Positions 2,090 through 53,035 of a DNA stretch of 64,000 nucleotides are shown here, piece after piece. This stretch comes from Scyliorhinus canicula (Eukaryota). The DNA is taken from assembly GCF_902713615.1 (NCBI RefSeq), contig NC_052157.1, positions 58,478,325 to 58,542,324 on the forward strand, written 5' to 3'. The notes beneath the pieces were generated by a model, which was not told the DNA's origin, made no database searches, and saw only the letters and a list, made by a program, of their open reading frames with translations. A program made the translations under genes and the position numbers. Numbering within the stretch: the first letter of the stretch is position 1; each line of letters opens with the position of its first letter.

Positions 2090-2455
2090 TTGGACTGTCA
2101 CAAGAGTGGAAAGGCCACCCTCCACGAGAGGTGACAGCGCAGGAAGGTTTGTGTGTACAGATTCCATGTCATTACAGCTATCCATCACATCTGGCAAACC
2201 AATCTCAAGTTGGAGTCTGGTTCAATAATGAAAGAGGGGCGACGTCAACTACTGTCTTTCACTCCAAGGATGACAATCACGTGGTGCCACGTTTCCGCCA
2301 TCGGACCCGGCTGTCTGGAAACCTGAAAGATGGCGACTGTTCGCTGATTATAACTAACGTCACACAGGAAGATTCAGGACCTTATTATTTCAGAATAGGA
2401 CCTGATGACAGGATTGCTTACAGAAACTATCCTGTAACCCGGCTTAATGTTTCTG
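2090..2455 (+). CDS. Gene A exon V1: Siglec-type V-set Ig domain
   Basis: Acceptor ctcctcag/TT, donor TCTG/gtaaat, phase 1-1, 122 codons. Sequence VGLSQEW...EGLCVQIPCHYSYP...DGDCSLII...DSGPYYFRI has the N-terminal Trp, extra B-strand Cys, E-strand Cys and F-strand Arg (AGA 2392-2394) typical of Siglec V domains. Confidence 0.92.
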
Positions 2456-2809
2456 GTAAATGTTTCTATACTATTTAATTCAACCCTCTCTGGGTTGATG
2501 TCCCCTAATGGCATATTTTATTTCCTCCAGTTTGAGAAATTCTGCCAGATAGGATAGCCAGTCTGCAGCCCTGGGTAGCGCAGCCGATTGCCAGCTGAAC
2601 TGGCGGGCGTTCAGGGAGGCATAGGCTAGGGCATCATCCCCTCTCCCCATGAAGAGCTCTGGCTGTTCTGAAACCCCCGAAGATTGCCACTAGAGGGCAC
2701 AGCTCCACTTTCACCCCACAACCCTGAACATGGTCTCAAAGAAGGTCGTCCGGTACCCGACAAGACCAGAACACGTGGGTGTGGTTTGCCAGGCATCCCT
2801 GCCACAGTT

Positions 2810-3553
2810 TGTCATGTTCTGTATACTGACCGATATGAATGATGCACTAGAGAACATGTAGTTCTGGACTACCTAAAATAATTTATTATAAAACAGCTGC
2901 GTGGTGAAGATAACTGAAATAAATATATAGCAAACTACTAACCCTAACTAACTATTCTAGAGCTACTGCAAAATACGTCTAACCACCAGCACGACATACT
3001 CCCAACTCCCCAAGGCACAGAGTCACATGGCAGGTATACACTGCCACCTGGTGGTCAGAGGTCATGTACATTACTATACACAAGATTGCTGATGCATATC
3101 ATCGAATGTTCACACTTGTGCTCCACCTCCAGAAGCCCACTGATTAGGTGTGCCCTGTATGCCATCTTTGGTTGTGTTAGGCTCAGCCATGCACATGGGG
3201 AGGAGAAGTTTGCCCTTTTGCTTCTTTGTTCCACAGTTCTCCCCATAACTCCCTGCCTAGCTCTTCCGCCCATTCGTCCTTGTCTCTTCCGAGGCTGGGT
3301 GGGGAAGGGAGTATCTCTTCCATTAGTTGGCCGTACATGTCAGCACAGATCCCGTCTCCTAGTTCGCCCGTGGTCAGAAGTCGCCTTTCCTGAGACTGCT
3401 CAGCACATCCCCACCACCGGAAGTCAATTAGTCACTTACCTGTTCATTCTGTACGTTTATTAACATCTTCCTTTAGTTTATTGCAGTTTTCTTCTGTATT
3501 GACTCGCTCCCAATTCAGTCTCATCTGTAACTTTTGAGTCTTATGTATCTACA
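2810..3553. mobile_element. LTR-like repeat between V1 and V2 (TG...CA ends)
   Basis: Starts tgtcatg at 2810 and ends ...tctaca at 3553; a minus-strand AATAAA lies near 2885. No TSD was verified, and the 3' end overlaps the duplicated intron sequence. Confidence 0.3.
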
Positions 3554-3591
3554 AACCATCCAGTGTTAAATGTTGATATCTCTCTCCCCAG

Positions 3592-3915
3592 TTGGACTGT
3601 CACAGGAGTGGAAAAGCCGCACTCCACAACAGGTGACAGCGCAGGAAGGTTCGTGTGTACAGATTCCGTGTCATTACAGCTATCCATCATGTCTGGCAAA
3701 GCAACCGCGAGTCGGAATCTGGACGAGTTACATGCAAGTGGGAGTATGGGAAATGTATTTTCACTCCAAGAATCAAAATCACCTGATGGATGGCAACTGT
3801 TTCCTGATTATAAACAATATCAGACGGGGAGATGAAGGGAGTTATCATTTCAGAGTAGAATTTGACAATGGTCCAAGCCATAAATATTACCCTTCCACCT
3901 GGCTTCGGGTTTCCA
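3592..3915 (+). CDS. Gene A exon V2: second Siglec V-set exon with an in-frame 42-nt deletion (tandem domain, alternative exon or decaying exon)
   Basis: Acceptor ctctccccag/TT, donor TCCA/gtaagt, phase 1-1, 108 codons, ORF open. It retains EGSCVQIPC, DGNC and YHFRV (Arg 3852-3854) but lacks the VVPRFRHRTRLSGN of V1. Confidence 0.75.
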
Positions 3916-5070
3916 GTAAGTGCCGTGTTATAATTATTCAAAAATTCACGTAAAGCACTCAGCAGAAAATAACACACACTGTGACATTACACATTAACAC
4001 AAAACACAGCTTATAACAGTGTCTGATTATCAATAACCTGGTGATAGATTCCAGTTCATCCTAAATCAACCTCTCTAATACTCTCTTTAATAGTAATGAT
4101 GAAATGTATTACTGTGTGCATCACTGTTATCAGGTTATCCACGCCCATCAATCTCCCTAATCCTGTTTAAAAGTTGGTCCTGAGTCAATAATGAGCCAGT
4201 GCACTCCAAGATCTGATCTGCTCCTCCACTCTCACGCAGTATTGTCAATTCAAGGGTCTCGGAGTGAAAGTGTATCAAACTGAGAGTCAGAAATGCCAAT
4301 GCCTGAAAGTAGTGTAAGGATTCCCATGTTTAAATCTTGCTTCCCTTGTGTAATTTCTTTATGTTCTGTTCTGCTGGCTTCTGTAATACTGCAGCCTTTG
4401 CTTTTAAACAGGGACACCTCAGTATAATGTGCTATTTCAACTCGTCCAAAAACACCTCCCGGACAATGTGTTATCAGGCATGGTCCACTGATGACTCGAT
4501 TTGATGGACTTGGCTGGCAGCCAATCAACTGCTCATATTCTCGGGACTTCTCTAATTCTCTGTGCTGATTGATGTTGGTCACAGAAGGTTGTGGAAAATA
4601 CAGCAGGCTCCATCTTGGGAGGTTTTAAGTTTCCCTTCTGATTTGAGAGGCTGGAGAGCCATAGTTCTCTCTCTCTCTCACATTCCTGATGACCTCTCTA
4701 AGGACCTGAAGAAAGGTTTATCTCTGCACCACAGCCAGTTAAACCCAAATTGCTACATGTGAAAGTGACTCCCCAAAATAATTCCTACGGCCCGTGAGGT
4801 TTGATTGAAGGGGCACACCAGAAGGTCCAAACCAACTGGTGCTTTTTAACACATAACGTCACTAGATAGCTGACTACAAAGACTACATCCTCAGTAGTGA
4901 AGATATCTATCTCACATCCCTCTCAATCCCCATTAGTTTGATCCTTTCTCCACTGTGTGTCTGTCTTCTGTGTGTGCGGGTGGAGAGTGAGACAGCATTA
5001 AGGGGAATAATTAGATTATCAGACCGTAGTTCTATTATCACCATTACTTGTTTATTTCTTCTCTTCTGGT

Positions 5071-5481: not shown

Positions 5482-5775
5482 ATTTCACAGATAAACCCAG
5501 GATATTCCCGGCTGAAATTATTGCAGGAAAGCGTGTGGACATAAGCTGCACCTTCAACACAACATGCAACGGAACAGCACCTGTCTTAACCTGGGACACT
5601 CCCACTGACGTACCTGGATCAGTCTCAAACACAGTAACTCAGCATGGCGTCACTCTGACCTATACTTCTGTTCTGACCCTGATCCCATCACTCAAACACC
5701 ACGGACAAAACCTTACGTGTAGAGTGAGATATCCATCTGTTTCATCGGAGCGAACCCTCAGACTGATTGTGCAAG
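5482..5775 (+). CDS. Gene A exon C2: Siglec C2-set Ig domain
   Basis: Acceptor gtgtcag/AT, donor CAAG/gtaagt, 98 codons. DKPRIFP...ISCTFNTTCNGTAPVLTW...PSLKHHGQNLTCRV carries the extra Cys that pairs with the V domain in Siglecs. Confidence 0.92.
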
Positions 5776-7510: not shown

Positions 7511-7868
7511 ACAGAGGTCCGTCACGATCCTGATGATTTGCACATGCATTGGAGGTGGATATCCAGCCTGCGTTAAACAATTCCGGATTTTTCTACAACA
7601 CGATCCTGCTCACAGCAATGGAGAGAAACATTGGATTGGGAGTCAAACAGGAAAATGATCAATTCTCACTAATGTTTCACACTCAGGTGAAAGTTCAGAT
7701 TGTCCACTCTTAGAGTGTTCACACTGAAAACATTCAGGATCCATTTAATCCCAGTGGATGGATCAATATTACAGCAAATGTCGCAGTGATATTCAGTTGG
7801 ATTGTTCAGCCAGAGTGAGAGATTGAAAGCAGAGAGTAAATGATGATTTCTTTCTGTGTATTTTTCAG

Positions 7869-7987
7869 ACAGTGGAGGAGAGAATCTGGACGTGATCCTG
7901 ATCCTGGGAATACGAGCTGTGATATTCATTGTAGTTGTCGTTATCACTGTCGCTGGGATTTGTGTCTGGGAGAGACGGACAGTTTAA
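7869..7987 (+). CDS. Gene A transmembrane/stop exon: (D)SGGENLDVILILGIRAVIFIVVVVITVAGICVWERRTV*
   Basis: Strong acceptor ttctgtgtatttttcag/AC, phase 1 matches the C2 donor. It encodes a hydrophobic stretch of about 26 residues with Arg (CGA 7913-7915) and TAA at 7985-7987. It is missed by the ORF track because it is short. Confidence 0.8.
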
Positions 7988-8104
7988 GGAAGTCCTCAGT
8001 CTGTTTAAAGCTTTGTGCAGTAACAATCTTGTCTGTCAGTGCAGCCAAATACCGTGTGGTGTTGGGTTAAGTTGCAATGAAACCAGTCACTTGTCCTGGT
8101 TAGA

Positions 8105-11717: not shown

Positions 11718-12215
11718 AGTGGAACCTGGAACCAGAGATTCTCCTTCTCCTCCTCAGCAGGCTGAAACTCTTCCTGGTCCATGGTGCTTCCATGTCCTGC
11801 TGTGTGGACACATCATAACCAAGGCATTGCCTCACTGTGTGCAGCCAACATGGTCGAATAGCAATGAACAGAAATGTGACGTCACCGAACTTTGTTATCA
11901 GAGCAGAATGTGCTTTCTGAATGCTGCACCTTTTTCATGCTGTATTAGATTGTAAGAAGCATTTGGGTAATGAACAATATTACATTATTAATACGAATGA
12001 TTAAAATGTTCAGGCTGTTCTCTGAATGTTTACATATTAAACTTCTTATTTTGTTGCAGATTTCTTGGTTCAAATTTCTTCCTTCCTGTTGTCATATTTT
12101 CCGCATCATGTCACTTCCTGCGCCAACTGTTACAAGGGAATGTCGCATGGAAACATTTTACGTTGTCATTTCACCCTCCTGACAGTGGTGGTGCTGCATT
12201 ACCATAACTTTCCCA
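11718..12215 (+). other. Candidate terminal/3'UTR exon of gene A, paralogous to the gene B 3'UTR
   Basis: Acceptor tgtacag at 11717. gccaacatggtcgaatagcaa...tgctttctgaatgctgcacc matches 53063-53160; ATTAAA at 12000-12005. Confidence 0.55.
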
Positions 12216-12276
12216 CTCAGATACGAGAGGCGATATTCTACTTTTGGGGACGATGTCTCAAAGTACTGGAGAATTC

Positions 12277-12886
12277 GCTCAGTACCGACCCTCTGACAGT
12301 GCAGCACTCCCTCAGTACCGACCCTCTGACAGTGCAGCACTCCCTCAGTACTGACCCTCTGACAGTGCAGCACTCCCTCAGTGCTGACCCTCTGACAGTG
12401 CAGCGCTCCCTCAGTACTGACCCTCTGACAGTGCAGCACTCTCTCAGTACTGACCCTCTGACAGTGCAGCATTCCCTCAGTACTGACCCTCTGACAGTGC
12501 GGCACTCCCTCAGTACTGACCTTTTGACAGTGCAGCAATCCCTCAGTACTGACCCTCTGACAGTGCAGCACTCCCTCAGTACTGACCCTCTGACAGTGCA
12601 GCACTCCCTCAGTACTGACCCTCTGAAAGTGCAGCACTCCCTCAGTACTGACCCTCTGACAGTGCAGCAGTCCCTCAGTACTGACCCTCTGACAGTGCAG
12701 CACTCCCTCAGTACTGACCCTCTGACAGTGCAGCACTCCCTCAGTGCTGACCTTCTGACAGTGCAGCAATCCCTCAGTACTGACCTTCTGACAGTGCAGC
12801 AATCCCTCAGTACTGACCCTCTGACAGTGCAGCACTCCCTTAGTACTGACCCTCTGGCACTCCAGCACTCCCTCAGTACTGACAGT
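12277..12886. repeat. 33-bp minisatellite (cagtactgaccctctgacagtgcagcactccct)n
   Basis: About 18 tandem units; 11-aa period STDPLTVQHSL in the ORF track. Confidence 0.95.
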
Positions 12887-14264: not shown

Positions 14265-14700
14265 AGTCCTGCTGTATGAACACATCATAACCATGACCAC
14301 ATCATAATCATAATCATGACTGTCTCACTGTGTGCAGCCAACATAGTCGAATAGTAATGAGCAGGAATATGATGTTGCTGAGCTTTGTTATCAGATCTAA
14401 ATGAGTTTTCTGAATGTTGTATCTTGCTCATTTTCTGATGGATTGCAAGAAATGTTTGCATTTTGTATAATATTACGTTTATTAATGAAGGGAATTAAAA
14501 TGCTTCACTTAATCTGGACAGATATATTTGTGTTAAACATCTTATTCTGGGGCAAACTTCCTGCTCCAAACCATTAATTCATGTGATTGTATTTCCGCAC
14601 CAAATTCTGCAAATCACCAAGTCCACATTTATCAAGAAAATTTTCCATGTAAACATGTCACACTGTAGTTACACTTTCCTGCCAGTGGTGCTGCTGTAAC
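14265..14700 (+). other. Second paralog of the Siglec 3'UTR segment
   Basis: gtcctgctgtatgaacacatcataacc...ctcactgtgtgcagccaacatagtcgaatag aligns with 11795-12210; ATTAAA at 14494-14499. Confidence 0.55.
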
Positions 14701-16929: not shown

Positions 16930-19900
16930 GACTAGAAGGAGCTCTCAGTGAGGATAGACTGCAGGGAAATGTTGAGGCAAGTATCCTGCAGAGGGCGGCA
17001 GAGCGGCAACGCTGATTGGCTGTTGCGGGGAGTGAATTGTGGAAAGCTGCTGTCGGGTGAGTTTCTAGAATTAATATATTTCAGGCAGTGGCTAAACCCG
17101 AGACACTACAAATGTAGTGTCGCCCACCCACCCTCCTCCTCTAACCAAAAAAAAAGACTATGTGGTGAGTTGGTGAGATAAGCTTTTCTTTCCTTTTCCT
17201 CTCTCCATCCTTCCACCACCTCTAACCTGCGGGGAGTGTGAAAATCAGGTCAGCTTTTTTTTTCTCTCTGTAATTGTCAAGTGGATAAATGGAAGGGGTG
17301 GCAGAGAGGGCAGTGCAATGTTCCTCCTGTAGGATGTTCGAGGTGAGGGACACTGTCAGTGGCCTTGCTGAGTTCACCTGCGGGAAGTGCACCCATCGCC
17401 AGCTCCTCAAAGACCGTGTTAGGGAACTGGAGCTGGAGCTGGATGAACTGAGGATCATTCGGGAGGCAGACTCGGCTATAGATAGAAGCTACAGGGATGT
17501 AGTTGCTCCTAAGAATGGGGGTAGCTGGGTGATGTTTAAAAGAAGGGGGAAGAAGCAGTCAGTGCAGGGATCCCCTGCGGTTGTTCCCCTCAATAACAGG
17601 TATATCGTTTTGGATGTTGTTCGGAAGGGGGGGGACCATCCAGAGGTAAGCACAGTGACCAGGTCTCTGGCACTGAGTCTGTCCCTGTGACTCAGAGGGG
17701 AAGGGGGGAGAGCAGGGGAGCATTAGTTATTGGAGACTCGATAGTTAGAGGTACAGATAGGCGGTTCTGTGGGAACGATAGAGGCTCATGGTTGGTGTGT
17801 TGCCTCCCGAGTGCCAAGGTCCGTGACGTCTCTGATCGTGTTTTCAGGATCCTTAAGGGGGAGGGGGAGCAGCCTCAAGTTGTGGTACACATCGGTACCA
17901 ACGACATAGGTAGGAAAAGGGACGGAGATGTAAAACAGGAATTCAGGGAGCAAGGGCAGAAGCTGAGAGCCAGGACAGACCGTGTTGTCATCTCTGGTTT
18001 GCTGCCAGTGCCACGTGTTAGCGAGGTGAAGAACAGAGAGAGAGTGCAGTTAAACACGTGGCTACAGGGATGGTGTAGGAGGGAGGGTTTCAGTTATTTG
18101 GATAATTGGAGCACTGGGGAAGGTGCGACCTGTACAAGCAGGACGGGTTACACCTGAACCAGAGGGGCACCAATATCCTGGGAGGGAAATTTGCTCCAGA
18201 TCTTAGGGAGGGGGGGCGGGGGGGGGGGGTTTAAACTAATTTGACAGGGGGATGGGAAACTGATTTGTAGTCCAGGAGATAACGTTGCTGGAGTTCAGGA
18301 AGTTGAAGGTAGTGCAGTATTGAGGAAGGTACCAAGGTCACAAGAGTGGACCTGCAGGCATGACGGTGGTTTGAAGTGTGCCTACTTCAATGCGAGGAGC
18401 ATCAGGAATAAGGTTGGTGAGCTTGAAGCATGGATTGGTACCTGGGACTACGATGTTGTGGCCATTACGGAGACGTGGATAGAACAGGGGAAGGAATGGT
18501 TGTTGGAGGATCCGGGGTTTAGATGTTTCAGTAAGATTGGGGATGGTGGTAAAAAAGGTGGAGGAGTAGCATTGTTAATCAAGGATAGTATAATGGCTGC
18601 AGAAAGGCAGTTTTGGAGGATCTGTCTACTGAGGTAGTGTGGGCTGAAGTTAGAAATAGGAAAGGAGCAGTCACTTTGTTAGGAATTTTATATAGGACCC
18701 CAAACAGTAACAGAGATGTGGAGGAAAAGATTGCAATGCAGATTCTGGATAGGTGTGGTAGACACAGGGTAGTTGGTATGGGTGACTTTAACTTTCCAAA
18801 TATTGATTGGAACCACTACAATTTGAATAGTTTGGATGGGGCTGTTTTTATCCAGTGTGTTCAGGAGGGTTTCCTCACACAATATGTGGATAGACCGACA
18901 AGAGGCGGGGCCACATTGGATTTGGTACTGGGTAACGAACCGGGCCAAGTGTTAGATTTGGTTGTGGGAGAGCACTTTGGAGATAGTGACCACAATTCGA
19001 TGACTTTCACTATAACAATGAAGAGGCATAGGAACGTATGGCAGGGCAAGGGTTATAACTGTGGGAAGAGTAATTACGTTGCAATTAGGCAGGAATTGGG
19101 GAACATAAAAATGAAGCAGGAACTGTCAGGCATAGGCACAATTGAGATGTTCAAGGAGCAAATACTGCGAGTCCTTGATATGTATGCCCATGTCAGGCAG
19201 GGAGAAAATGGTCGAGTGAGGGAACCATGGTTTACAAAAGAGGTTGCATGTCTTGTCAAGAGGAAGTGTAGCCACCGAAGTTGGCCACTTCCCGACATAA
19301 AATGGAGAATTGAAATGCATGCAGGGAAAATTGGACAATTTCAGAAAGACAAGCAGGCTGCAGAATCTCTCAGTGTATTCTGCCTGCAAAGAAACCAGAC
19401 AGCATTGAAACTAACAAGTTTGCATACTAATTGAGCGATTCCTGGTGATTCCCGGGCACAATGGACACAATCGAGAATAACAAAGGTCAAGCTAGGCTCT
19501 TAGGCGCCAGCAGGAGTCCCGGACAATAAGTTACAAACAGCCCCAAGAACCGCCCAGCGATCGGGAAACAGCCCCAGTATTGGGGAATTCAAACCAATCG
19601 ATTGGTATGAGGTCCAATCAATTGCAAGCAGGTATCGGGTCCGCCCAGATGGGCGCGAAGCCCCTGTGACCTATAACGGACAGATCCCAAGTTCGCTCTC
19701 TCTCTTAGCCGGCCCACCCAGCAGAACACCTTTGCAGCAGCTCTCTAAGAACTTGAACGTGAGAAGCAGAGGCCTGGCCAACAGCTACATCGACAAGTAA
19801 GTGTCAACCAACGCTCGCTACGAGAATAGACACTCCTGACCCCTTAGCCCGCACCAACTGGGAAGCCTGCAGTCTCAGGACAGAACAAGAGGCCATTGTT

Positions 19901-22058
19901 CCCTGATCCAGTGTGTTCCCTTATCGAAGATAAGTATTGGCTTATAGTGGTAGGAATAGTTTAGTCCATTAGTATTAGTTGCATGAGTATCGATTTACTG
20001 TGTAATAATAAATGTGTTTGATTGAACCTTACTAACTGGTGTATTGAGTCATTGATCTGAACTTGAACTTGAACCTCGTGGCGGTATCATAAAGATACCT
20101 GGCGACTCTAGAGATAAAGAATAAAACAGAGCCAAGTGAGTGTTAAGCACACTCACCAGAACGAGCAACAGAAGAAGGGGGCTTATGTAAGGATGAGAAA
20201 ACAAGGTTCAGTTAGGGCACTTGAGGGATACAAGATAGCTAGGAAGGAGCTCAAGAAAGGGCTTAGGAGAGCTAGGAAGGGGCATGAGAAGTCCTTGGGA
20301 GGTAGGATCAAGGAAAACCCCAAGGCTTTTTACATTTATGTGAGGAATAAAAGAATGACCAAAGTGAAGTTAGGGCCGGTCAAGGACAGTAGTGGGAATG
20401 TGTGCATGGAGTCAGAAGATATAGGAGAGGTGTTGAATGAATACTTTTCTTCAGTGTTCACCATAGAGAGGGGCCATGTTGTTGAGGGGGATAGTGCAAC
20501 ACAGGCTGGTAGGCTGGAGGAGGTAGATATTCGGAAGGAAGATGTGTTAGAAGTTTTGAGAAGCCCGAGGATAGATAAGTCCCCTGGGCCTGATGGGATA
20601 TACCCTAGGATTCTTTGGGAAGTGAGGGATGAGATTGCAGAACCTTTGGCTTTGATCTTTATGTCCTCACTGTCTACAGGAATAGTGCCAGAAGACTGGA
20701 GAGAGGTGAATGTTGTCCCCTTGTTCAAGAAAGGGTACAGGTATAACCCTGGGAATTATAGGCCGGTTAATCTCACTTCGGTCATAGGTAAATTATTGGA
20801 AAAGGTCCTGAGGGTTAGGATTTATGATCATTTGGAAAGATACAGCTTAATCCAGGATAGTCAGCACGAATTTGTGAGGGGTAAGTTTTGCCTCCCAAGT
20901 TTGATTGTATTCTTTGAGGAGGTAACTAAGTACATAGATGAAGGTAGAGAAGTTGACGTCATATACATGGATTTTAGTAAGGCATTTGATAAGGTGCCCC
21001 ATGGTCGGCTCATGCAGAAAGTAAGGAGGCATGGCATAGAGGGGAATTTGGCCGATTGGATCAGTTACTGGCTATCGCACAGCAGACAGAGGGTGGTGGT
21101 GGATGGAAAATTTTCATCCTGGAGCCCAGTCACCAGCGGTGTACCACAGGGATCAATGCTGGGTCCTCTGCTATTGGTGATTTTTATCAATGTCTTGGAT
21201 GATGGAGTTGAAGGTTAGATTAGTAAATTTGCTGATGACACCAAGATTGGTGGAGTAGTGGATAATGTGGAGGGCTGTTGTAGGCTGCAAAGAGACATTG
21301 ATAGGATGCAGAGCTGGGATGAAATTGGCGGATGGAGTTTAACTCTGATAAGTGTGAGATGATTCATTTTGGTAGGACAAATTTGAATGCGGATTACAGG
21401 GTTAATGGTAGGGTTCTGAAGAATGTGGAGGAGCAGAGAGATCATGTCCAAAGATCTCTGAAAGTTGCCACCCAAGTGGATCGAGCTGTGAAGAAAGCTG
21501 CAACTGTACAAGACCTTGATTAGACCACATTTGGAGTATTGTGTGCAGTTCTGGTCACCTCATTATAGGAAGGATGTGGAAGCATTGGAAAGGGTGCAAA
21601 GGAGATTTACCAGGATGCTGCCTGAATTGGAGGGTAGGTCTTATGAGGAAAGGTTGAGGGAGCTATGGCTTTTCTCATTGGAGTGAAGGAGGATGAGAGG
21701 TGACTTAATTGAGGTGTATAAGATGATGAGAGGGATAGATAGATTGGACGTTCAGCGACTTTTTATTCGGGTGGATGTAGCTGTTCCAAGGGGGCACAAC
21801 CTTAAGGTTCATGGTGGAAGATATAGGAGGGATGTCAGAGGTAGGTTCTTTACTCAGAGAGTGGTTGGGGCATGGAACGTACTCCCAGCTATGGTAATGG
21901 AGTTGGACACTTTAGGAACTTTCAAGCGGTTATTGGATAGGCATATGGAGTGCACTAGAATGATTGGGAGTAGGTTGATTTGATCTTAGATCCAGGCTAA
22001 TTCGGCACAACAAAGTGGGCTGAAGGACCTGTACTGTGCTGTACAGTTCTATGTTCTA
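16930..22058 (+). mobile_element. Near full-length CR1 LINE (HER1-like): ORF1, APE endonuclease, RT; inactivated and interrupted by a solo LTR
   Basis: ORF1 17289-18157 has CxxC..CxxC, a coiled coil RVRELELELDEL and SGNH esterase motifs GDSIVR/HIGTND. EN 18320-19260 has YFNARSIRNK, GDFNFP and LDLVL. RT 20136-21980 has [10 protein letters not shown] and FADD. Tail ends gttctatgttcta. Confidence 0.95.
19267..20170 (+). mobile_element. Solo LTR (about 904 bp) inserted in CR1 ORF2
   Basis: TGTA...AACA ends and a 4-bp TSD GAAG (19263-66, 20171-74); removing it restores VKRKKGAY; AATAAA near 20007 and 20120. Confidence 0.85.
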
Positions 22059-23574: not shown

Positions 23575-23614
23575 ATGCTTAAGAAATCTTACTTCCTCCT
23601 GTCACTTCTCCAAG
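23575..23614 (+). CDS. Gene B leader exon: MLKKSYFLLSLLQ (exon starts at 23533)
   Basis: Acceptor tttctctttcag at 23532, ATG at 23575, donor CAAG/gtaata in phase 1. Joined to the V exon it gives the signal peptide MLKKSYFLLSLLQVGLS-QEW. Confidence 0.85.
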
Positions 23615-27292: not shown

Positions 27293-27325
<33 letters not shown>

Positions 27326-31281: not shown

Positions 31282-31434
31282 AAAACTGGCGAATCGGCAC
31301 CGATTCTCATTGGAATCGATTGTGTACCACGAGACGCCGGTGCCAGCTCCTTACCAGTCGTTGAATCGGTTCAGGGGCGGAGCCTGTTTTGCTGTCAGGG
31401 AACTCTAAGAATCCTGATCTGGCATCAACACTTC

Positions 31435-32370
31435 GGGCGGAATTCAACGACCCCACGCAGGGTCGGGGAATCACCCAGGGCCGGCGTGAATCTCGCCCCC
31501 GCCGTGGCCGGAATTCTCCACCACCCGGGAATCGGCGGGAGCAGGAATCACGCCCCGCCGATCGGCGTGCCCCCCGTGCCGGTTGGCGGATCCCCCGCGG
31601 CGATTCTCCGGCCCGCGATGGGCCGAGGTCCCGCCGCTGACAGGCCTCTCCCACCGGCGGGAATTAGAACATAGAACATAGAAAAGTACAGCACTGAACA
31701 GGCCCTTCGGCCCTCAATGTTGTGCCGAGCCATGATCACCCATCTCAAACCCACGTATCCACCCTATACCCGTAACCCAACAACCCCCCCCCTTAACCTT
31801 ACTTTTATTAGGACACTACGGGCAATTTATCATGGCCAATCCACCTAACCCGCACATCTTTGGACTGTGGGAGGAAACCGGAGCACACGGAGGAAACCCA
31901 CGCACACAGGGGGAGGACGTGCAGACTCCACACAGACAGTGACCCAGCGGGGAATCGAACCTGGGACCCTGGCGCTGTGAAGCATTTATGCTAACCACCA
32001 TGCTACCCTGCTGCCCCTAATTGGAGCACCTCTGGTGCCAGCGGGATTGGCGGTGCGAGTGGGCTCCCGGGGTCCTGGGGGAGGGGGGGCGCGGGGCGAT
32101 CGGAGCCCAGGGGTGCCCCCACGGTGGCCTGGCCTGGGATTGGGGCCCACCGATCGGCGGGCGGGCCTGTGCCGTGGGGGCACTCTTTTTCTTCGGTCGC
32201 CGCCACGGCCTCCCCCATGGCGGAGGCGAAAGAGAATCCCCATTTCGCCAGTTCGCGCATGCGCCGGTGCGTCAGCAGCCGCTGATGTCACCACCGGCGC
32301 ATGCGCGAACTGGCGAAGGCTTTTCGGCCCGCCGCGACGCCAGGCGGCAGGCATCAAGGCCGTTGGCGCC
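31435..32370. mobile_element. GC-rich Harbinger-type MITE with a nested SINE
   Basis: Starts gggcggaattc; gcgcatgcgc palindromes; similar to the MITEs at 34188, 37597 and 59720. Confidence 0.7.
31666..32018 (-). mobile_element. Young full-length V-SINE inserted in a MITE
   Basis: AATT on both sides (31662-65, 32019-22); near-identical to 22944-23294. Confidence 0.9.
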
Positions 32371-32509
32371 TTCTGAAACAAATTGACAATGAATTCAGTT
32401 AAAACTCCATTCAAGTATCCTTCCAACCTTAGTGTGTCTCTGGTTACGAAGCAACAAAATTGTGCTTTCCCCCAGCGCGTTTACGTTTCATGACTTAACC
32501 CTCTTTAAT

Positions 32510-33708: not shown

Positions 33709-34077
33709 TTGGACTGTCACAAGAGTGGAAAGGCAACACTTCACGAAACGTGACAGCGCAGGAAGGTTCATGTGTGAAGATTCCATGTCATTACAGCTAT
33801 CCGTCACATTTAGCAAATCGACCTCGAGGTGCAGTCTGGTTTAATACTGAGGAAGTGATTCCCTGGGCTCGCCTAGCCTTCCACTCCAAGGATCACAATC
33901 ACGAGGCACCAAAATTCCGCAATCGGACCCGGCTGTCTGGAGACCTGAAAGACGGAGACTGTTCCCTGATTATAAACAACATCACACGGAATGATTCAGG
34001 ACCTTATTTTTTCAGGATAGAATTTGGCCATGGTTTCGACCATAACTATTACCCTGCAACACGGCTTCATGTTTCTG
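33709..34077 (+). CDS. Gene B V-set exon
   Basis: Acceptor ctcctcag/TT, donor TCTG/gtaagt, 123 codons; EGSCVKIPC, DGDC, YFFRI (Arg AGG 34014-34016). Confidence 0.93.
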
Positions 34078-34672: not shown

Positions 34673-35177
34673 ACAGTGTCTGATTATCAATAACCTGGTG
34701 ATAGCTTCCAGTTCAGTCCTGAAGCGACCTCTAATATCTACTTCACTATCAATGATTAAATGTATTGACTGTGTCCATCACTGTTATCAGGTCTGCCTGA
34801 TAGGCTTTCCCATCAATCTCTCTAATCTTGTATAAAATTCTGACATATTGACGAAATAACGATTCACATTTCTATAGCACAATGAAATAATTCTTGAAAC
34901 AAAGTCCCTGCTGTGATGTTGGAGACACAGTGGTTAATGTGTGCAGAGTAAGATCCCAGAAACAGCCATGTGATCAATAATTTGCTCATCTGTTTTAGGT
35001 GCTGGTTCAGACATTGTTTCAAATAGTCCCTGTCCTGCTCTACTCAAGATTTAATTTCAACAGTTTGTCAGATTTCTGTAAAAGTAACGAGCCAGTTCAA
35101 CTTGAACTGTAAACGGCTCCTCCCCTCTCACCCGGGAATCTCATTTCAATGGTCTCAGTGTCAAAATGCATTATTAT

Positions 35178-35717: not shown

Positions 35718-36011
35718 ATTTCACAGATAAACCCACGATATTTCCTGCTGAAATTATTGCAGGAAAGCGTGTGGACATAAGCTGCACCTTCAACACAACG
35801 TGCAACGGAACAACGCCTGTCTTAACCTGGGACACTCCCACTGACGTACCTGGATCAGTGTCAAACACAGTAACTCAGCATGGCATCACTCTGACCTATA
35901 CTTCTGTTCTGACCTTGACTCCATCACTCAAACACCACGGACAAAATCTCACCTGTAGACTGAGATATCCATCTGTTTCATCGGAGCGGACACTCGTACT
36001 AACTGTGCAAT
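35718..36011 (+). CDS. Gene B first C2-set exon
   Basis: Acceptor gtgtcag/AT, donor CAAT/gtaagc, 98 codons; 7 aa differences from the gene A C2. Confidence 0.93.
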
Positions 36012-37149: not shown

Positions 37150-37443
37150 ATAAGCCGGAGATTTCCCAGGAGTCAGAGTGCACCCGGAGGTCAGAGGGAG
37201 TTACCTGCACCTGTATGGCCAACTCCAATCCGCCCGGAGACCTCACCTGGCACCTGCCCCATGCCAACATCAGTGGTAACCAGACACAGGGGCGTTTGGT
37301 GTCATGGCAGGTCAGAGATGGGCATCTGATGATTGGCTCCCTGATCCTGACGGTTCCCCAGGATGAGGAGGAAGTAACAGCATCTTGCTCAGTTCGAAAC
37401 CCGCATGGAGAAGCCATGTTCAAGGTGTATCTGTGGGTCAAAG
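37150..37443 (+). CDS. Gene B second C2-set exon
   Basis: Acceptor ctccacag/AT, donor AAAG/gtgaga, 98 codons: (Y)KPEISQESECTRRSEGVTCTCMANSNPPGDLTW...VTASCSVRNPHGEA...VK. Confidence 0.9.
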
Positions 37444-39292: not shown

Positions 39293-39389
39293 GTAGAGAC
39301 TCCAGAGAATGGACAGTCGGATTGCTCATGGCTGGAATCATACTTTGTGGTTTTGTGGCTGGAATCTTAATCTCCATGTATGTGAAGAA
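39293..39389 (+). CDS. Gene B transmembrane exon (G)RDSREWTVGLLMAGIILCGFVAGILISMYVK(K)
   Basis: Acceptor gttacag/GT, donor AAGAA/gtaagt, phase 1-2; the hydrophobic segment has no charged residue. Confidence 0.88.
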
Positions 39390-41289: not shown

Positions 41290-44200
41290 CATAGGCAAGA
41301 TTAGGAAAGAGGACCTATTGGGGGGTTATTAGGCGTTCGGAACAAAATTTAAAAAACAGGTCCTCAAGGGTCATAATCTCTAGGTTACTACCTGAGCCAC
41401 ATGCAAATTGGCATAGGGATGGGAAATTAGGGATGTAAACACGTGGCTAAAGGAGCGGTGTGGGAAAGATGGGTTCCATTCCATGGGGCATTGGCATCAG
41501 CATTGGGACAGGAAGGATCTGTACCATTGGGACGGTCTCAACCTGAACCGATCTGGGACCAGTGTTCTAGTGGAAGGGATAAATAGGGTAGTCTCAAGGA
41601 CTTTAAACTAGCAAGTGTTGTGGAAGGGAAGGGTAACACTACAGGATGTAAAATGGTTCATGGGAAGCAAAGCAGCAGGTTAGCACGTGGAAAGATGGGT
41701 TCAACTGCACGCAAAGTAATGAAAAAAGATGAAGGGAAGAAGAACTCAGGAGATGTTATTGATGGAGGTGTTAGGGTTCAGAAATAAGGTATAAAAACAA
41801 GCATAAAAGCACTTTATCTATAGGCCACCAAATAACAACATCATGGTGGGGCGGGCAGTAAACAAAGAAATAACTGATGCATGTAAAAATGGTACGGCAA
41901 TTATCATGGGTGATTTTAATCTACATGTCGATTGGTCAAACCCGGTCGGTCAGGGTAACCTTGAGGAAAAGTTCATAGAATGTTTCTTCAAACAGTATGT
42001 AATGGACCCCGGGGGGGGGGGGGGGGGGGGGGGAGGAGCTATTTTAGATCTGGTCCTGCGTAATGACACAGGAATAATTCATGATCTTATAGTTAGGGAT
42101 CCTCTTGGAAGGAGCAATCACAGTATGGTTGAATTTAAAATACAGATGGAGCATGAGAAGGTAAAATCCAATACTGGTGTCTTGTGCTTAAACATAGGAG
42201 ACTACAAAGAGATGAGGGAGGAGTTGGCTAGGGTAGATTGGGAGCAAAGACTTTGTGGTGGAACAATTGAGGAACAGTGGAGGACTTTCTAAGCGATTTT
42301 TCACAGTGCTCAGAAAAAGTATATACCAATGAAAAGGAAGGACTGTAGGAAAAGGGATAATCAGCCATGGGTACCTCAGGAAATAAAGGAGGGTATCAAA
42401 TTGAAAGAAAATGCATACAAGTGGCAAAGATTAGTGAGAAAGTGGATGATTGGGACATCTTTAAAGTTCAAAAGAAAGTTATGAAGGTAAGTAAGGTAGG
42501 ATATGAGAGTAATCTAGCTCAATATAAAAACATACAGCAAAAATTTCTACAAATATATAAAACAAAAAATAGTAGCTAAGGTAAATATTAGTCCTTCAGA
42601 GGATGAGAAGGGGGATTTAATAATGGGAAATGAGGAACTGGCCAAGGTATTAAATAGGCATTTTGTGTCGATCTTCACAGTGGAAGACGTAACTAACATG
42701 CCAATAATTGTTGTCGAGGAGGCTATGGAATGAGGATCCAGAAACAATCATTATCAATAAGGAGGTATTGATGGACAAGCCAATGGAGCTAAACGGAGCC
42801 AAGTCTCCTGGTCTTGATGGAATGCATCCCAGGGTACTGACAGAGGTGACAGGGGAAATAGAAAATGCGCTCATGGTAATTCACCAAAATTCTCTGGATT
42901 CTGGGGCAGTTCCAGCAGATTGGAAAACAGCAAATGTGGCGCCACTGTTTAAAAGAGGAGGTAGACACAATGTAGGTAACTATAGGCCAGTTAGTTTAAC
43001 TTATATAGTGGGGAAAAAGCTTGAATCTTTCGTTAAGGAAAAAATAGTGAAATAACAACATCATGGTGGGACGGGCAATAAACAAAAAAATAACTGATGC
43101 ATGTAAAAATGGTACAGCAATTATCATGGGGAATATTAATCGACATGTTGATTGGTCAAACCCGGTCAGTCAGGTCAGCCTTGAGGAGTTCAAAGGCAGG
43201 TCATGTTTGACTAATTTAGTGGAATTCTTTGAGGACATTGTGAGCGCGGTGAACAACTGGGAACCAGTGGATGTGGTGTATCTGGATTTCCAGAAGGCAT
43301 TACACAAGGTGCCACACAAAAAGCTGCTGCCTATGGTAAAGGTGTACGGTGTTACGGGTAATGTATTAGCATGGATAGAAGATTGGTTAACAGACATAAA
43401 GCAAAGAATGAGGATAAATGGGTGTTTTGCTGGTTGGCGATCGGTGGCTAGTGGTGTGTCCCAGGGCACATAATTGTTGTGTCTGCAATTGTTTACAATA
43501 TACACAGATGATCTGGAGTTGGGACCAAGTGTAATGTGTCAAAGTTCGCAGATGACACTAAGGTGAGTGGTAGAGCCAAGTATGCGGAGGACACTGGAAG
43601 TCTGCAGAGGGATATAGATAGCTTAATTGAGTGGGCAAGGGTCAGACAGATGGAGTTTAATGTTGATAAATGTGAGGTCATCCATTTTGGTAGGAATAAC
43701 AGCAAAATAGACTATTATTTAAATGGTAAAAAATTACAGCATGCTACTGGGCAGAGGGACCTGGGTGTCCTTGTGCATGAATGGCAAGACGTTTGTTTTC
43801 AGGTGCAGCAGGTAATTAAAAAGGCAAATGGATTTTTGTCCTTCATTGCGAGAGGGGTGGAGTTTAAAAGCAGGAAGGTTATGTTGCTGCTGTATAGAGT
43901 GCTGGTGAGGCCACACCTGGGGCTGGATTCTCTGACAGCGGGATGCTTCATTTTGCCAGCAGCCCGGGATTTCCCGACGGCATGGGGCTGCCCCACAATG
44001 GGAAACCCCATTGACCGGCCGGCGTAATGGAGCATCCGGTCGGCGGGGTGAAACAGAAATGTGTGGCGCGGCGGGATGGAGAATCCAGCCCCTGGAGTAC
44101 TGTGGTCTCCTTACTCGAGAAAGGATGCACTGGCACTGGAGGGGGTGCAGAGGAGGTTCACCAGGTTAATTCCAGAGTTGAGAGGATTAGCTTATGAGGA

Positions 44201-44630
44201 GAGACTAAGTAGACTGGGACGATACTCATTTGAATTTAGAAGAATGAGGGGGGAATCTTATAGAAACATATAAAATAATGAAGGGAATACATAGGATAGA
44301 AGCATGGAGGTTGTTTCCACTGGCGGGTGAAACCAGAACTAGGTGGCATAACCTCAAAATAATGTGCAGCAGATTTAGGACTGAGTCGAGGAGGAACTTC
44401 TTCATGTAAAGGGTTGTGAATCTGTAGAATTCCCTGCCCAGTGATGCAGTTGAGGCTGCCTCGTTAAATGATTTTCAGGCAAAGTAGATCGATTTTTGAA
44501 CAGTAAAGGAATAAAAGGTTATGGTGAGCGGGCAGGTAAGTGGAGCTGAGTCCACAAAAAGATCAGCCATGATCTCATTGAATGGTAGAGCAGGCTCGCG
44601 GGACCTGCTCCTAGTTCTTGTGTTCTTAAG
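41290..44630 (+). mobile_element. Rearranged CR1 LINE
   Basis: ORF1 esterase end, EN (GDFN), RT (SKFADDTK), tail cctgctcctagttcttgtgttct; contains an internal duplication and a MITE. Confidence 0.85.
43920..44091. mobile_element. 172-bp Harbinger MITE
   Basis: Perfect 13-bp TIR gggctggattctc/gagaatccagccc; TSD CTG; removing it restores the CR1 sequence RPHLEY. Confidence 0.9.
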
Positions 44631-45597: not shown

Positions 45598-45679
45598 GAG
45601 GAAGACAGCGACTGAGGAGAGAGTTTCAGAGATCAGTGACATTGAATTGAGCCCCATTCCACTCACGGCGAAGCATCAG
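45598..45679 (+). CDS. Gene B cytoplasmic exon (K)RKTATEERVSEISDIELSPIPLTAKHQ
   Basis: Acceptor tattgcag/G, donor CAG/gtacaa; phase 2-0 bridges the TM exon and the terminal exon exactly. Confidence 0.78.
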
Positions 45680-45928: not shown

Positions 45929-45929
45929 G

Positions 45930-47760
45930 TGTGGACGGAGTGCTACACTACTGGAGCTTCAGTATTGAGGGAGTTCTGCACTGCCGGAGCATCAGTACTG
46001 ATGGAGCGCTGCACTGCTGGACCATCAATACTGAGGGATCGCTGCACTATCAGAGGGTCAGTACTGAGGGAGTGCTACACTACCGGAGCTTCAGTACTGA
46101 GGGAGCGCTGCATTGTCAGAGGGTCAGTACTGAGGGCGTGCTACACTACCGGAGCTTCAGTACTGAGGAAGTGCTGCACTGTCAGAGGGTCAGTACTGAG
46201 GGAGCGCGACACTGCCGGAGAGTCAGTGCTGAGGGAGTGCTGAACTGCCAGAGGGTCAGTATGAGGGAGTGCTGCACTGTCAGAGGGTCAGTACTGAGGC
46301 AGTGCTGCACTGTCAGAGGGTCAGTACTGAGAGAGTGCTGCACTGTCAGAGGGTTCATACTGAAGGAGTGTTGCACAGTCAGAGGGTCAGTACTGAGGGA
46401 GTGCTACACTGTCAGAGGGTCAGTACTGAGGGAGTGCTGCACTGTCAGAGGGTCAGAACTGAGGGAGTGCTGCACTGCCAGAGGGTCAGTACTGAGGGAG
46501 TGCTGCACTGCCAGAGGGTCAGTACTGAGGAAGTGCTGCACTGTCAGAGGGTCAGTACTGAGGGAGCGCGACACTGACGGAGATTTAATGCTGAGGGAGT
46601 GCTACACTGCCGGTGCGTCAGTGCTGAGGGAGTGCTGAACTGCCAGAGGGTCAGTATGAGGGAGTGCTGCACTGTCAGAGGGTCAGTACTGAGGCAGTGC
46701 TGCACTGTCAGAGGGTCAGTACTGAGAGAGTGCTGCACTGTCAGAGGGTTCATACTGAAGGAGTGTTGCACAGTCAGAGGGTCAGTACTGAGGGAGTGCT
46801 ACACTGTCAGAGGGTCAGTACTGAGGGAGTGCTGCACTGTCAGAGGGTCAGAACTGAGGGAGTGCTGCACTGCCAGAGGGTCAGTACTGAGGGAGTGCTG
46901 CACTGCCAGAGGGTCAATACTGAGGGAGTGCTGCACTGTCAGAGGGTCAGTACTGAGGGAGTGATGCACTGTCAGAGGGTCAGTACTGAGGGAGTGCTGC
47001 ACAGTCAGAGGGTCAGTACTGAGAGAGTGCTGCACTGTCAGAGGGTCAGAACTGAGGGAGCGCTGCACTGTCAGAGGGTCAGTACTGAGGGAGTGCTGCA
47101 CTGTCAGAGGGTCAGTACTGAGGGAGCGCTGCACTGTCAGAGGGTCAGTACTGAGGGAGTGCTGCAAAGTCAGAGGGTCAGTACTGAGGGGGTGCCGGAC
47201 TGTCAGAGGGTCAGTACTGAGGGAATGCTGGAGTGTCAGAGGGTCAGTACTGAGGGAGTGCTGCACTGTCAGAGAGTCAGTACTGAGGGAGTGCTGCACT
47301 GTCAGAGGGTCAGTGGGAGTGCTGCACTGTCAGAGGGTCAGTACTGAGGAATTGCTGCACTGTCAGAGGGTCAGTACTGAGGGATTGGTGCACTATCCGA
47401 GGGTCAGTACTGAGGGAGTGCTGGATTGTCCGAGGGTCAGTACTGAGGGGGTGCTGTACTGTCAGAGGGTCGGTACTGAGGGAGTGCTGCACTGTCAGAG
47501 GATCAGTACTGAGGGAGTGCCGCACTGTCCGAGGGTCAGTACTGAGGGAGTGCTGCACTGTCAGAGGGTCAGTACTGAGGGAATGCTGCACTGTCAGAGG
47601 GTCAGTACTGAGGGAGTGCTGCACTGTCAGAGGGTCAGTACTGAGGGAGTGCTGCAAAGTCAGAGGGTCAGTACTGAGGGAGTGCTGGATTGTCCGAGGG
47701 TCAGTACTGAGGGAATGCTGGCGTGTCGGAGGGTCAGACCTGAGGGGTGCGGCACTGAAG
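45930..47760. repeat. 33-bp minisatellite (gagggtcagtactgagggagtgctgcactgtca)n with a 395-bp higher-order duplication
   Basis: Reverse orientation of the 12277 array; identical variant strings start at 46269 and 46664. Confidence 0.95.
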
Positions 47761-48275
47761 GAGGGTCAGGACTGAGCGAATGCTGCTCTGAAGCTCAGTG
47801 GAGCTCAAGTCCCCAGATTAAGATTGCAACATGATATTTCCTACCTCAGGTTAGTGAGAGGAACGGAGAGAGAAAAAGGAAACAGGAGAGAGTGTGAATG
47901 AGAGAGAGAGGATGTGATTCTCCGACAATGTTGCGCACGAGCGGGACCACAACGTGGCTGGAGAATTCCGGGAGGGGCCGACAGTGAACCTCCCAACAGC
48001 CTCTGTGCCTCCCTGGATTCACCAAAGTCCGCTAGACATCAGAGTCGGTGCTCCGCCCCAAATGGGCGGGACTGAATGATGCTCTACTTCTAATTTAACA
48101 GCCCAGATCCACCGGCCTCCCTTGATTTTCCGGCATACCCAGGGAAGCTGCAGCTCGGTGCCGATCATTGCTGGTCCACACAAACATGGACCAGGCGGAA
48201 CGGCACCTGGGGCTTCCCCCCCAGCCATTGGAGACTCTTGGGTGGTCAGGGTAAGTGCAGGGTGGCCCCCTGGCC

Positions 48276-51200: not shown

Positions 51201-52144
51201 ACTGGGCTGGGCAAAGTAAGAAGTCTTACAACAGCATGTTAAAGTCCAACAGGTTTGTTTCGAATCACTAGCTTTCGGAGCGCAGCTCCTTCCTCAGGTG
51301 AACTTTAAAACAGTAATGATTCCCCTTTCAGCTGCAGCCTTTTTATGAACATGTAGTGCTCATTGGTCTCGTTCACCTGCTTTTTGCAGTGAGCATCGAA
51401 TTTCTGTCACACTATGTTCTACTTAGTTTTATCCTCATCTTCAACAAATTCGAAGGAGTTATGAAGTTCTAATGCTTGCGTCACAGCTAAACTAAGAAAA
51501 AGCGTTATTTTTATCTGATCGGAGGCATTATCTAGCCTGGAGGCAGATAGGAAAACTTCAAACTGCTGTTTGAAGAAAGCCCAGTTTTGACATAGTTTCC
51601 AGTTTGTTCTGAAGTACTCAGGCTTCTTTAGACTCTCCACCTTACGATTTTTCTTCTGTGTATATTTTCTGACGGTGCTGCAGTGTGATTGTTTTCTTCA
51701 ATCTTCTTAAAGCCAACCTGTCTAATCTAACAGCTTATTATTTGTATAAATAAACTCCTGGTACCATGTGGTGTTCTTTGAGTTGCTAATTTTAGGATGG
51801 TTGGCGTAGTGTTCACAAAGACCACAAAATAGTTTTAAATTGAACAAAGCTATAACTTTATTAACACTATTTAATTGGATTTGACACTTACTCCTATATA
51901 ATATACAGTTGATAAACACATAATCTGCACTCATCTACTACTAATCTCTACATTATTACATTAACTATGATCTGCTCTCACTCACACTGTCTTTCCTTCA
52001 GTCTGTTCTCCAGCTTTCTCCCCAACCTCTCCAAACAAGGCTCAGCATCAATTCCTTATATAGTTGTACATCTAGCTCCCTCTAGTGGTTGAATTAGACA
52101 TTACATTAACCCTTGCAGTTCTTTACATTTATGATAATGTCACA
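48276..52144 (-). mobile_element. Ty3/Gypsy LTR retrotransposon, internally deleted, two LTRs
   Basis: LTRs 48276-48656 and 51767-52144 (TG...CA); 5-bp TSD TGGCC; PPT beside 48657; PBS beside 51766; gag knuckle CPAKGKQCTNCCKFNHF; protease FKIDTGA; integrase FARHGIP. Confidence 0.92.
51264..51302 (-). ncRNA. Minimal hammerhead ribozyme motif in a Penelope fragment (51178-51302) nested in the Gypsy gag
   Basis: Reverse complement: ucac-CUGAGGA-a-GGAGC-ugc-GCUCC-GAAA-G-CUA-guga; intact core and 4-bp stem I. Confidence 0.62.
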
Positions 52145-52795
52145 TGGCCCATCCCCTGGAACGTGGGCACCTTTTCAGTGCCCAGCTGGCACCATGGCAC
52201 TGCCAAAGTGCCCAGATGACACTGCCAAGCCAGCAGGAGCACTGCCTGGGTGCGACGGTAGCTGTGCAAGGGTGCCCGAGTGCTAGAGTGGCCAAGGTTC
52301 AGAGGCCAAAGGGGGCATGCCCATGGAACAAGGGTTGCAAGGGGGATTTTAAGAATGGGAGGATGTGGGGCAGGTAAGTAGGGGCCTCTGGGAAGTTGGA
52401 GGGAGGGGTGATGGGTGGGGGTGCAAGTAGAGAGTGGGTGCTGTCTGGAAGCTTGGGGGGGCCTGAAGTAGGGGATCCCAGGGACACTATAGCGGGATTT
52501 CTCACTACCCCATAAGCTAGGTGCTGCGGGGCAATGGGAAACTCCCAAGGTCCCCAAAAAGTGTCACTGAATAGCGGTGCAGCACTCGCCGGCAATGCCG
52601 GCGGGCAACTCCCTTATAAAACCCAACACAAATGAACTTCGAAAATTTTCCAAAGAATTGCGCCCGTAGAGAGAGAAAGAAGGATTCACTGAGCCACGAC
52701 TGACCCTAACGAGGCGACACAACAGTTTAACCCTATCAGTGCCAGTAAATGATGTGAGAATGTCTTCTGTTTCCATTTCTCTGTGCGGTAAACAG

Positions 52796-53035
52796 AACAT
52801 GCTGCTTACTGACCCACAGAACACAACCAGAGACACAACTAGAAAGGCTGAGAAATCTGCTCCACCGCGTCACTCTGAAGGTCCAGTAGGGGAAGATGCT
52901 GGACATGAGAATCCCAGCGGCCCTGACAACCTTCTCTACGCCAACATCAACATCGCGAAGCTGCGTAGTGGTGACGGGACTGTTTCCAGCGAAGTGGATA
53001 CGGAATATGCGCAGATCACATTCCAGCAGAACTGA
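52796..53035 (+). CDS. Gene B terminal exon with ITIM-like LLYANI and ITSM-like TEYAQI
   Basis: Acceptor taaacag/AAC in phase 0; motifs at 52931-52948 and 53000-53017; TGA ends at 53035. The spacing resembles the proximal ITIM and distal TEYSEI of CD33-related Siglecs. Confidence 0.9.
   Translation, partial: NMLLTDPQNTTRDTTRKAEKSAPPRHSEGPVGEDAGHENPSGPDNLLYANINIAKLRSGDGTVSSEVDTEYAQITFQQN

Follow-up and report, generated by a model that had tools for sequence, protein, structure and literature searches.

Two adjacent Siglec-family genes with opposite predicted signalling modules in the catshark Scyliorhinus canicula

Results

Two same-strand genes with Siglec-type exons

We analyzed a stretch of 64,000 nucleotides (nt) from the catshark Scyliorhinus canicula (NCBI RefSeq assembly GCF_902713615.1, contig NC_052157.1, positions 58,478,325 to 58,542,324 of the forward strand), referred to below as the window. 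A first-pass annotation, made from the letters of the sequence, had proposed that it carries a tandem pair of Siglec-like receptor genes, one activating (gene A) and one inhibitory (gene B). The analysis confirmed two adjacent, transcribed genes of the Siglec family on the same strand; the account that we consider likely is that they are members of a large Siglec family specific to sharks and rays. The exon coordinates are given in Table 1; the outer limits that had been proposed, 2090 and 53035, coincide with the base at which the V-set sequence of gene A begins and with the base at which the gene B stop codon ends.

The first V-set exon of gene A (V1) matched the Pfam families V-set (5e-15) and Ig_CD22 (7.5e-12), and was 100% identical to residues 15-135 of RefSeq protein P0153. 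Its essential arginine lies within the motif YYFRI (2383-2397). The second V-set exon (V2) gave a weaker V-set match (4e-7), with Siglec-7 and sialoadhesin as its top PDB matches at 1e-6; it is short of about 14 residues in its C''-D region, and the arginine is kept in YHFRV (3843-3857). The counterpart of V2 in the Scyliorhinus torazame protein P0137 retains the C''-D region and has serine in place of the arginine (YHFS). Given the deletion in gene A and the loss of the arginine in P0137, the second V domain looks relaxed in both species.

The last exon of gene A has an arginine codon within the membrane span (CGA, 7913-7915), placed in the outer third of the transmembrane (TM) helix, and then a five-residue tail, ERRTV, before a TAA stop at 7985-7987, just as the first-pass annotation had described it. 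The reading frame is open across all four gene A exons, and the Ig exons of both genes are in phase 1. A scan of window positions 1-2089 gave no signal-peptide exon for gene A, and the leader of its RefSeq model, MIGKSYFLLSLLQ, is not present in the window; the P0153 gene spans 17,156 bp (GCA_902713615.2), which places the gene A leader upstream of the window. RefSeq P0153 ("sialic acid-binding Ig-like lectin 13", 272 amino acids) is gene A, composed of that leader, V1, the C2-set domain and the arginine-bearing TM segment (Arg-TM), with V2 skipped and otherwise identical to the gene A model.

In gene B the essential arginine of the V-set domain lies within YFFRI (34005-34019), and the membrane span is without a charged residue. 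The 82-nt cytoplasmic exon puts the TM exon and the last coding exon back in frame, and with it the chain of exons closes. The tail carries an ITIM (the tyrosine-based inhibitory motif of immunoreceptors), LLYANI (52931-52948), and, 17 residues away, an immunoreceptor tyrosine-based switch motif (ITSM), TEYAQI (53000-53017). The neutral TM segment and both motifs were found at the positions that the first-pass annotation had given. RefSeq P0200 ("myelin-associated glycoprotein-like isoform X2", 463 amino acids) is identical to the gene B model over 449/449 residues. Another candidate TM segment for gene B, at 48262, was dropped, as the RNA joints and P0200 use that at 39293-39389.

Table 1. 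Exons of genes A and B, in positions of the window (position 1 is its first nucleotide).
Feature	Positions	Strand	Remarks and basis
Gene A V-set exon 1 (V1)	2090-2455	+	phase 1; translation; Pfam
Gene A V-set exon 2 (V2)	3592-3915	+	tandem duplicate of V1; RNA joints; Pfam
Gene A C2-set exon	5482-5775	+	Pfam C2-set_2 2.4e-8; RNA contigs cover 5511-5745
Gene A stalk/TM exon	7869-7987	+	SGGENLDVILILGIRAVIFIVVVVITVAGICVW-ERRTV-stop; sequence, RNA contig
Gene B leader exon, coding part	23575-23614	+	MLKKSYFLLSLLQ; donor G|GTAAT; peptide search; P0200 N-terminus
Gene B V-set exon	33709-34077	+	PDB phmmer; RNA contigs 33711-34077, ending at donor
Gene B C2-set exon 1 (C2-1)	35718-36011	+	Pfam C2-set_2; RNA joint
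Gene B C2-set exon 2 (C2-2), membrane-proximal	37150-37443	+	RNA joints; MAG domain 5 alignment
Gene B TM exon	39293-39389	+	WTVGLLMAGIILCGFVAGILISMYV; ends phase 2; sequence, RNA joint
Gene B 82-nt cytoplasmic exon	45598-45679	+	RKTATEERVSEISDIELSPIPLTAKHQ; AG/GT sites; in RefSeq P0200
Gene B last coding exon	52820-53035	+	stop TGA 53033-53035; sequence; in RefSeq P0200

Both genes are represented in RNA data

Transcription was assessed through Logan contigs of RNA sequencing runs, of which run X2 carries the same species label and run X1 a related one (about 96% identical). Contigs from X1 and X2 cover V1 of gene A at 2088-2454, and both runs contain the joint of V1 to V2 (2455>3592, GT..AG); the joint of V2 to C2 (3915>5482) was seen in X1. 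A further X1 contig (7869-8015) starts exactly at the TM acceptor of gene A and passes the stop codon, so the short tail is not spliced out in that transcript. Gene A transcripts bear V1 and V2 in tandem, and the RefSeq model has V1 alone; the product would have one or two V-set domains.

For gene B, the joint 37443>39293 was present in runs X13, X25 and X7, and the joint 36011>37150 in X13, where a 1,019-nt contig extends 577 nt past the TM donor. Many more RNA runs contained gene B than gene A. In all, four predicted joints were seen in RNA contigs (2455>3592, 3915>5482, 36011>37150 and 37443>39293). The V2 exon of gene A, the place of its leader upstream of the window and the gene B leader exon are additions to the first-pass annotation.

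In run X4, raw reads give about 20x coverage of the Arg-TM exon (window 7863-8049), with synonymous differences at 7891 (T) and 7933 (G). They use the same TM acceptor and are spliced upstream to the end of a V exon, ...SYHPVTQLQVS, which the window does not contain. These differences, together with the foreign V end, indicate that the reads stem from a paralogous gene bearing this cassette, as a V-to-TM isoform without C2.

Sequence and predicted fold identify both products as Siglecs

In a phmmer search of the PDB, the V domain of gene B matched Siglec-5 at 7e-17 and CD33 at 4e-13, and alongside CD33 stood Siglec-10, MAG (myelin-associated glycoprotein), Siglec-8, sialoadhesin and Siglec-7 at about 1e-12. 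The first non-Siglec, pIgR, came at 1e-7, as did, approximately, Siglec-15. When gene B was searched at full length, MAG was found at 8.5e-37 and the V-C2 part of CD33 and of Siglec-5 at about 1e-27. The AlphaFold model of P0153 (confidence score, pLDDT, of 84) has two Ig domains and a TM helix, and in a fold search with this model the top 21 PDB matches and the top 24 Swiss-Prot matches were all Siglecs, with a template modelling score of 0.76-0.78 to CD33. A V-set followed by a C2-set domain in a type I membrane protein, the layout of the Siglec family, was recovered both by Pfam (V-set, Ig_CD22, C2-set_2) and by fold.

When 40 elasmobranch members were aligned, the F-strand arginine (Arg115) was present in 39/40, the exception being P0181 with glycine at that position. 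In the motifs YYFRI, YHFRV and YFFRI this arginine aligns with the ligand-contacting arginine of the YFFR motif in Siglec-5, Siglec-7 and CD33. Six framework cysteines (C35, C40, C97, C158, C164 and C215 of P0153) each occur in 36-40 of the 40 members and follow the Siglec pattern of three in V (C-x4-C and an E-strand cysteine) and three in the first C2; by comparison with known Siglec structures, they would be expected to form an intrasheet and an interdomain disulfide bond. The Siglec-like nature of the V domains, as first proposed, is therefore upheld by their best sequence and fold matches and by the arginine, and as judged by sequence and model A and B can be placed firmly in the Siglec family. 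Since both V domains keep the arginine and the cysteine framework, recognition of sialoglycans is their likely ligand mode.

The membrane-proximal C2-2 domain of gene B (37150-37443) aligned well with domain 5 of mammalian MAG (ESxC...CxCxxxSNPxP), which is probably why RefSeq calls the protein MAG-like. This similarity of sequence hints at a shared MAG/CD33-related ancestry.

Genes A and B differ in their V domains and share their C2 domain

The homology of V exons, C2 exons and introns between the two genes, claimed in the first-pass annotation, was confirmed by alignment. Nucleotide identity was 78% over the V exon with 266 bp of its upstream flank, 87% over the C2 exon (C2-1 in gene B) and its flanks, and 81% over a 157-bp intron block (4016-4172 against 34673-34837). 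The single V exon of gene B resembles V1 of gene A in its upstream flank and V2 in its downstream intron, so that gene A carries a tandem V duplication of about 1.5 kb.

At the amino acid level the C2 domains were 92% identical, and the V domain of gene B was 64% identical to V1 and 54% to V2 of gene A, these two being 48% identical to each other. By the method of Nei and Gojobori, the ratio of nonsynonymous to synonymous divergence (dN/dS) between A and B was about 0.5 for V, with a synonymous divergence (dS) of 0.44, and 0.2 for C2, with a dS of 0.195. The V domain of gene B was 84% identical to that of P0154, another S. canicula Arg-TM gene on the same chromosome. The TM exons of A and B are unrelated in sequence.

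About 15.6 kb separate the stop codon of gene A from the leader of gene B on the same strand, the close linkage that is expected of paired receptors, and the signalling modules are opposite in kind, with a charged TM segment and a short tail in A and an ITIM/ITSM tail in B. The ectodomain likeness demanded of strict paired receptors is missing from the V domains and is confined to C2 at 92%. A tblastn search with both proteins against the whole window gave no further family exons, no ITIM relic near gene A and no Arg-TM relic in gene B.

A block of 188 bp (53061-53248) begins 26 nt past the stop codon of gene B and ends near an ATTAAA at 53227. Downstream of gene A, and on the same strand, stand two copies of it at 11836-12021 and 14329-14504 (75% and 69% identity), each with an acceptor-like tgtgtgcag in front. 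Either a repeat or 3' exons, relic or alternative in nature, could account for these copies. The homology stops short of coding sequence and so gives no evidence of a lost ITIM exon.

The binding domains of A and B are too unlike, and that of P0154 is nearer to B, so a matched pair in the sense of Siglec-5/14 is unsupported. From the paired-receptor logic of the first-pass annotation the opposite modules remain; set against it are the 64% identity of the V domains, the greater closeness of B to P0154 and the recurrence of both modules in a large cluster. We therefore regard A and B as probably family neighbours of opposite output and not a matched pair.

The arginine and ITIM/ITSM cassettes recur across shark orders

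A full HMMER scan returned 273 representative proteins at E<=1e-10. The nearest relatives of the two genes were RefSeq models of many sharks and rays, named "Siglec-5/7/8/10/11/12/13/14", "CD33-like" or "MAG-like", and many of these have two to four V-like domains. Among the representative family matches, the Arg-TM cassette (ILILGIRA...) was found in S. canicula (P0153 and P0154), S. torazame (P0006 and P0137), Carcharodon (P0168) and Chiloscyllium (P0026), and its conservation between the Scyliorhinus species was 86-95%. The ITIM/ITSM tail (LLYANINFSKLPSGDGTV...TEYAQIRFQ) was found in at least five genera: Cetorhinus, Carcharodon, Hemiscyllium, Stegostoma and Scyliorhinus. With a proximal ITIM and a distal ITIM-like motif or ITSM, the tail of gene B has the arrangement of CD33-related Siglecs. 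Where gene A has TAA (7985-7987), S. torazame and Carcharodon have a lysine codon, and their tails go on for six or seven residues past it; the truncated tail is common to both S. canicula genes, P0153 and P0154.

Trees of V domains were built from 121 columns and are poorly resolved; they include no named MAG, Siglec-1 or Siglec-15 references. In these trees a single clade with a support of 90 took in all elasmobranch V domains, and neither the amniote CD33-related clade, supported at 100, nor shark "CD22-like" proteins fell within it. In both trees the V domain of gene B grouped with that of P0154, an Arg-TM protein, and with an S. torazame protein, and the seven V domains that sit on Arg-TM genes required seven state changes. 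We consider it probable that two old modules, the Arg-TM cassette and the ITIM/ITSM tail, are combined with many V lineages across shark orders.

Other features of the window

A 33-bp satellite with several open frames (LSTDPLTVQHS repeats) forms arrays downstream of gene A (12267-12883), in the intron of gene B between the TM and the first cytoplasmic exon (45934-47790, in the orientation opposite to that of the first array) and downstream of gene B (56695-57413). Open reading frames (ORFs) for an endonuclease and a reverse transcriptase of the long interspersed nuclear element (LINE) type (Pfam Exo_endo_phos_2 and RVT_1) are located at 17289-22000, between gene A and the gene B leader, and at 41843-44300, within a long intron of gene B. 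The first intron of gene B contains a GC-rich block (26000-32400, 57-60% GC) in which many ORFs overlap, on one strand as on the other, and three ORFs of this block gave no Pfam match. Near the end of the window, the ORF at 63481-63981 encodes a SCAN domain (Pfam 8.5e-7) and is preceded by a Glu/Lys/Arg-rich ORF; it probably belongs to a gag-like gene of a retroelement.

Discussion

A predicted activating and a predicted inhibitory receptor

The product of gene A would be a type I receptor whose Ig part is made up of one or two V-set domains and a single C2 domain, followed by an arginine-bearing TM segment and a five-residue tail. By analogy with Siglec-14, Siglec-15, Siglec-16 and other charged-TM immunoreceptors, it would need an adaptor with an acidic TM segment and an ITAM (the tyrosine-based activation motif of immunoreceptors) for surface expression and signalling. 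The product of gene B is predicted to be a V-C2-C2 receptor with a neutral TM segment, a membrane-proximal ITIM and a distal ITSM, in the layout of CD33-related Siglecs, whose tyrosine-phosphorylated tail would recruit phosphatases of the SHP-1/2 type. Between the two genes the V domains have diverged (64% identity) while the C2 exon was kept or homogenised (92%).

A closer relationship would be that A and B share a sialoglycan ligand and that A arose from B, or together with B through gene conversion, in response to pathogens that exploit B, as for Siglec-5/14. Their adjacency on one strand (A stops at 7987, the leader of B begins at 23575), the homology of their V and C2 exons with flanking sequence, and their opposite signalling modules would fit such a history, and the synonymous divergence of C2, half that of V (0.195 and 0.44), could reflect conversion. 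However, it is precisely in the ligand-binding V domain, where the known pairs are near-identical, that the catshark genes share 64% of amino acids (78% of nucleotides), and the V domain of B is far nearer to P0154 (84%), with which it groups in both trees. The TM exons are moreover unrelated, the sequence downstream of A is free of ITIM-exon relics, and the architectures are V-V-C2 and V-C2-C2. We consider a strict pair of this kind unlikely. The family might also have a Siglec fold that does not bind sialic acid, an ability lost or never possessed, and instead recognize protein or other ligands. The V domains evolve fast (dN/dS about 0.5), and the arginine has been lost in some mammalian Siglecs and, to glycine, in P0181; yet it is present in 39/40 members across sharks and rays, in its YFFR context and with the cysteine framework, and it matches the ligand-contacting arginine of Siglec-5, Siglec-7 and CD33, which makes this explanation quite improbable.

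Gene A could instead be non-signalling or decaying, whether its product serves as a decoy or is retained inside the cell or the gene is turning into a pseudogene, for lack of a suitable adaptor or through its truncated tail. The TAA in place of the lysine of S. torazame and Carcharodon, at the cost of 7 tail residues, is in keeping with this, as are the 14-residue deletion in V2, the S. torazame counterpart of V2 without the arginine (YHFS), the far smaller number of RNA runs than for gene B, and the absence of FcR-gamma from sharks as reported in 2014. Against decay, the frame is open over four exons, V1 retains the arginine and all its cysteines, and the same short tail in P0154 shows that it is tolerated. 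The Arg-TM cassette is kept at 86-95% within Scyliorhinus and can still be made out in Lamniformes and Orectolobiformes, a pattern that speaks for purifying selection, and a near-identical TM exon is covered at about 20x in run X4. We think it very unlikely that gene A is decaying or silent in this way.

Several observations do weigh against our preferred account, in which A and B are neighbours of opposite output drawn from a larger family. For the joint of C2 to the TM exon in gene A the basis is the RefSeq model P0153 together with P0137, its orthologue in S. torazame; the RNA joints seen in this gene are those of V1 to V2 and of V2 to C2. No FcR-gamma was found in shark data by Akula et al. 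(2014; PMC4016189), and literature searches for shark DAP12/TYROBP returned nothing usable. The truncation of the gene A tail by the TAA could, from the sequence comparison, represent incipient decay, though P0154 has it too. Finally, the weakness of trees based on 121 columns makes the shuffling of modules suggestive only.

Significance and relation to published work

Literature searches on Siglecs in shark, catshark and cartilaginous fish or Chondrichthyes found no study of this family or of pairs within it. The first-pass annotation knew of no characterised shark pair, and we too found no paper on one; the genes themselves are already in RefSeq under Siglec and MAG-like names, and with P0153 and P0200 both have been machine-annotated. 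As the logic of paired receptors is also well known, what the present finding adds is a new lineage for a pattern already known. In the whale shark genome paper, Siglecs are merely listed among Ig-domain families. Published surveys, among them Bornhoefft et al. (2020; PMC7226832), state that fish have just four conserved Siglecs and no CD33-related inhibitory ones; sharks are mentioned neither there nor in a review from 2025 that deals with sialoglycan-binding proteins and with paired receptors (PMC13358205).

The main value of the locus is the picture of CD33-type inhibitory and charged-TM activating Siglecs as an old, modular family of cartilaginous fish. With about even confidence, we suggest that the galeomorph ancestor, and possibly that of all elasmobranchs, already had a split into activating and inhibitory Siglecs, independent in origin from the Siglec-5/14 and Siglec-11/16 pairs of mammals and made from two old cassettes recombined with fast-evolving and often tandem V exons. 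If this is true, Siglec biology resembling that of the CD33-related group moves to the base of the jawed vertebrates, against the published view on fish. Cao and colleagues are said to have described, in 2009, CD33-related-like clusters in teleosts. The age and origin of "self" sensing by Siglecs and of their activating counterparts become directly testable in a basal jawed vertebrate, and the locus raises the question of which adaptor serves the shark Arg-TM receptor.

Comparison with known Siglec systems

CD33 and the CD33-related Siglecs gave the best two-domain matches to the catshark genes, in sequence and in fold. They share with them the V and C2 domains, the three-plus-three cysteines, the arginine of the YFFR motif, the combination of a proximal ITIM with a distal TEYxxI, and a fast-evolving V domain within a multigene cluster. 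They differ in that the membrane-proximal domain of gene B resembles domain 5 of MAG and in that the expansion is specific to elasmobranchs. MAG (Siglec-4) is the best full-length PDB match of gene B. With five Ig domains, it is a single conserved gene and has a different tail; gene B, a member of an expanded family, encodes three Ig domains and a tail of the ITIM/ITSM type. Siglec-12 has two tandem V-sets at its N-terminus, as do gene A transcripts and many shark relatives, several of which RefSeq names "Siglec-12"; the V duplication is independent, and Siglec-12 is inhibitory whereas gene A is of the Arg-TM type.

The human pairs Siglec-5/14 and Siglec-11/16 are, like catshark A and B, linked genes in which a partner with an ITIM and an ITIM-like motif or ITSM stands beside one with a basic TM segment and a short tail. 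In the human pairs gene conversion has kept the V domain, and the first C2, near-identical, whereas in the catshark the identity of the V domains is 64% and the two genes have different architectures. Unlike its human counterparts, the catshark Arg-TM exon appears to be an old cassette found in several genes and shark orders. The elasmobranch V clade stands apart from the amniote CD33-related clade, which fits the suggestion of the first-pass annotation that the shark receptors were possibly derived independently.

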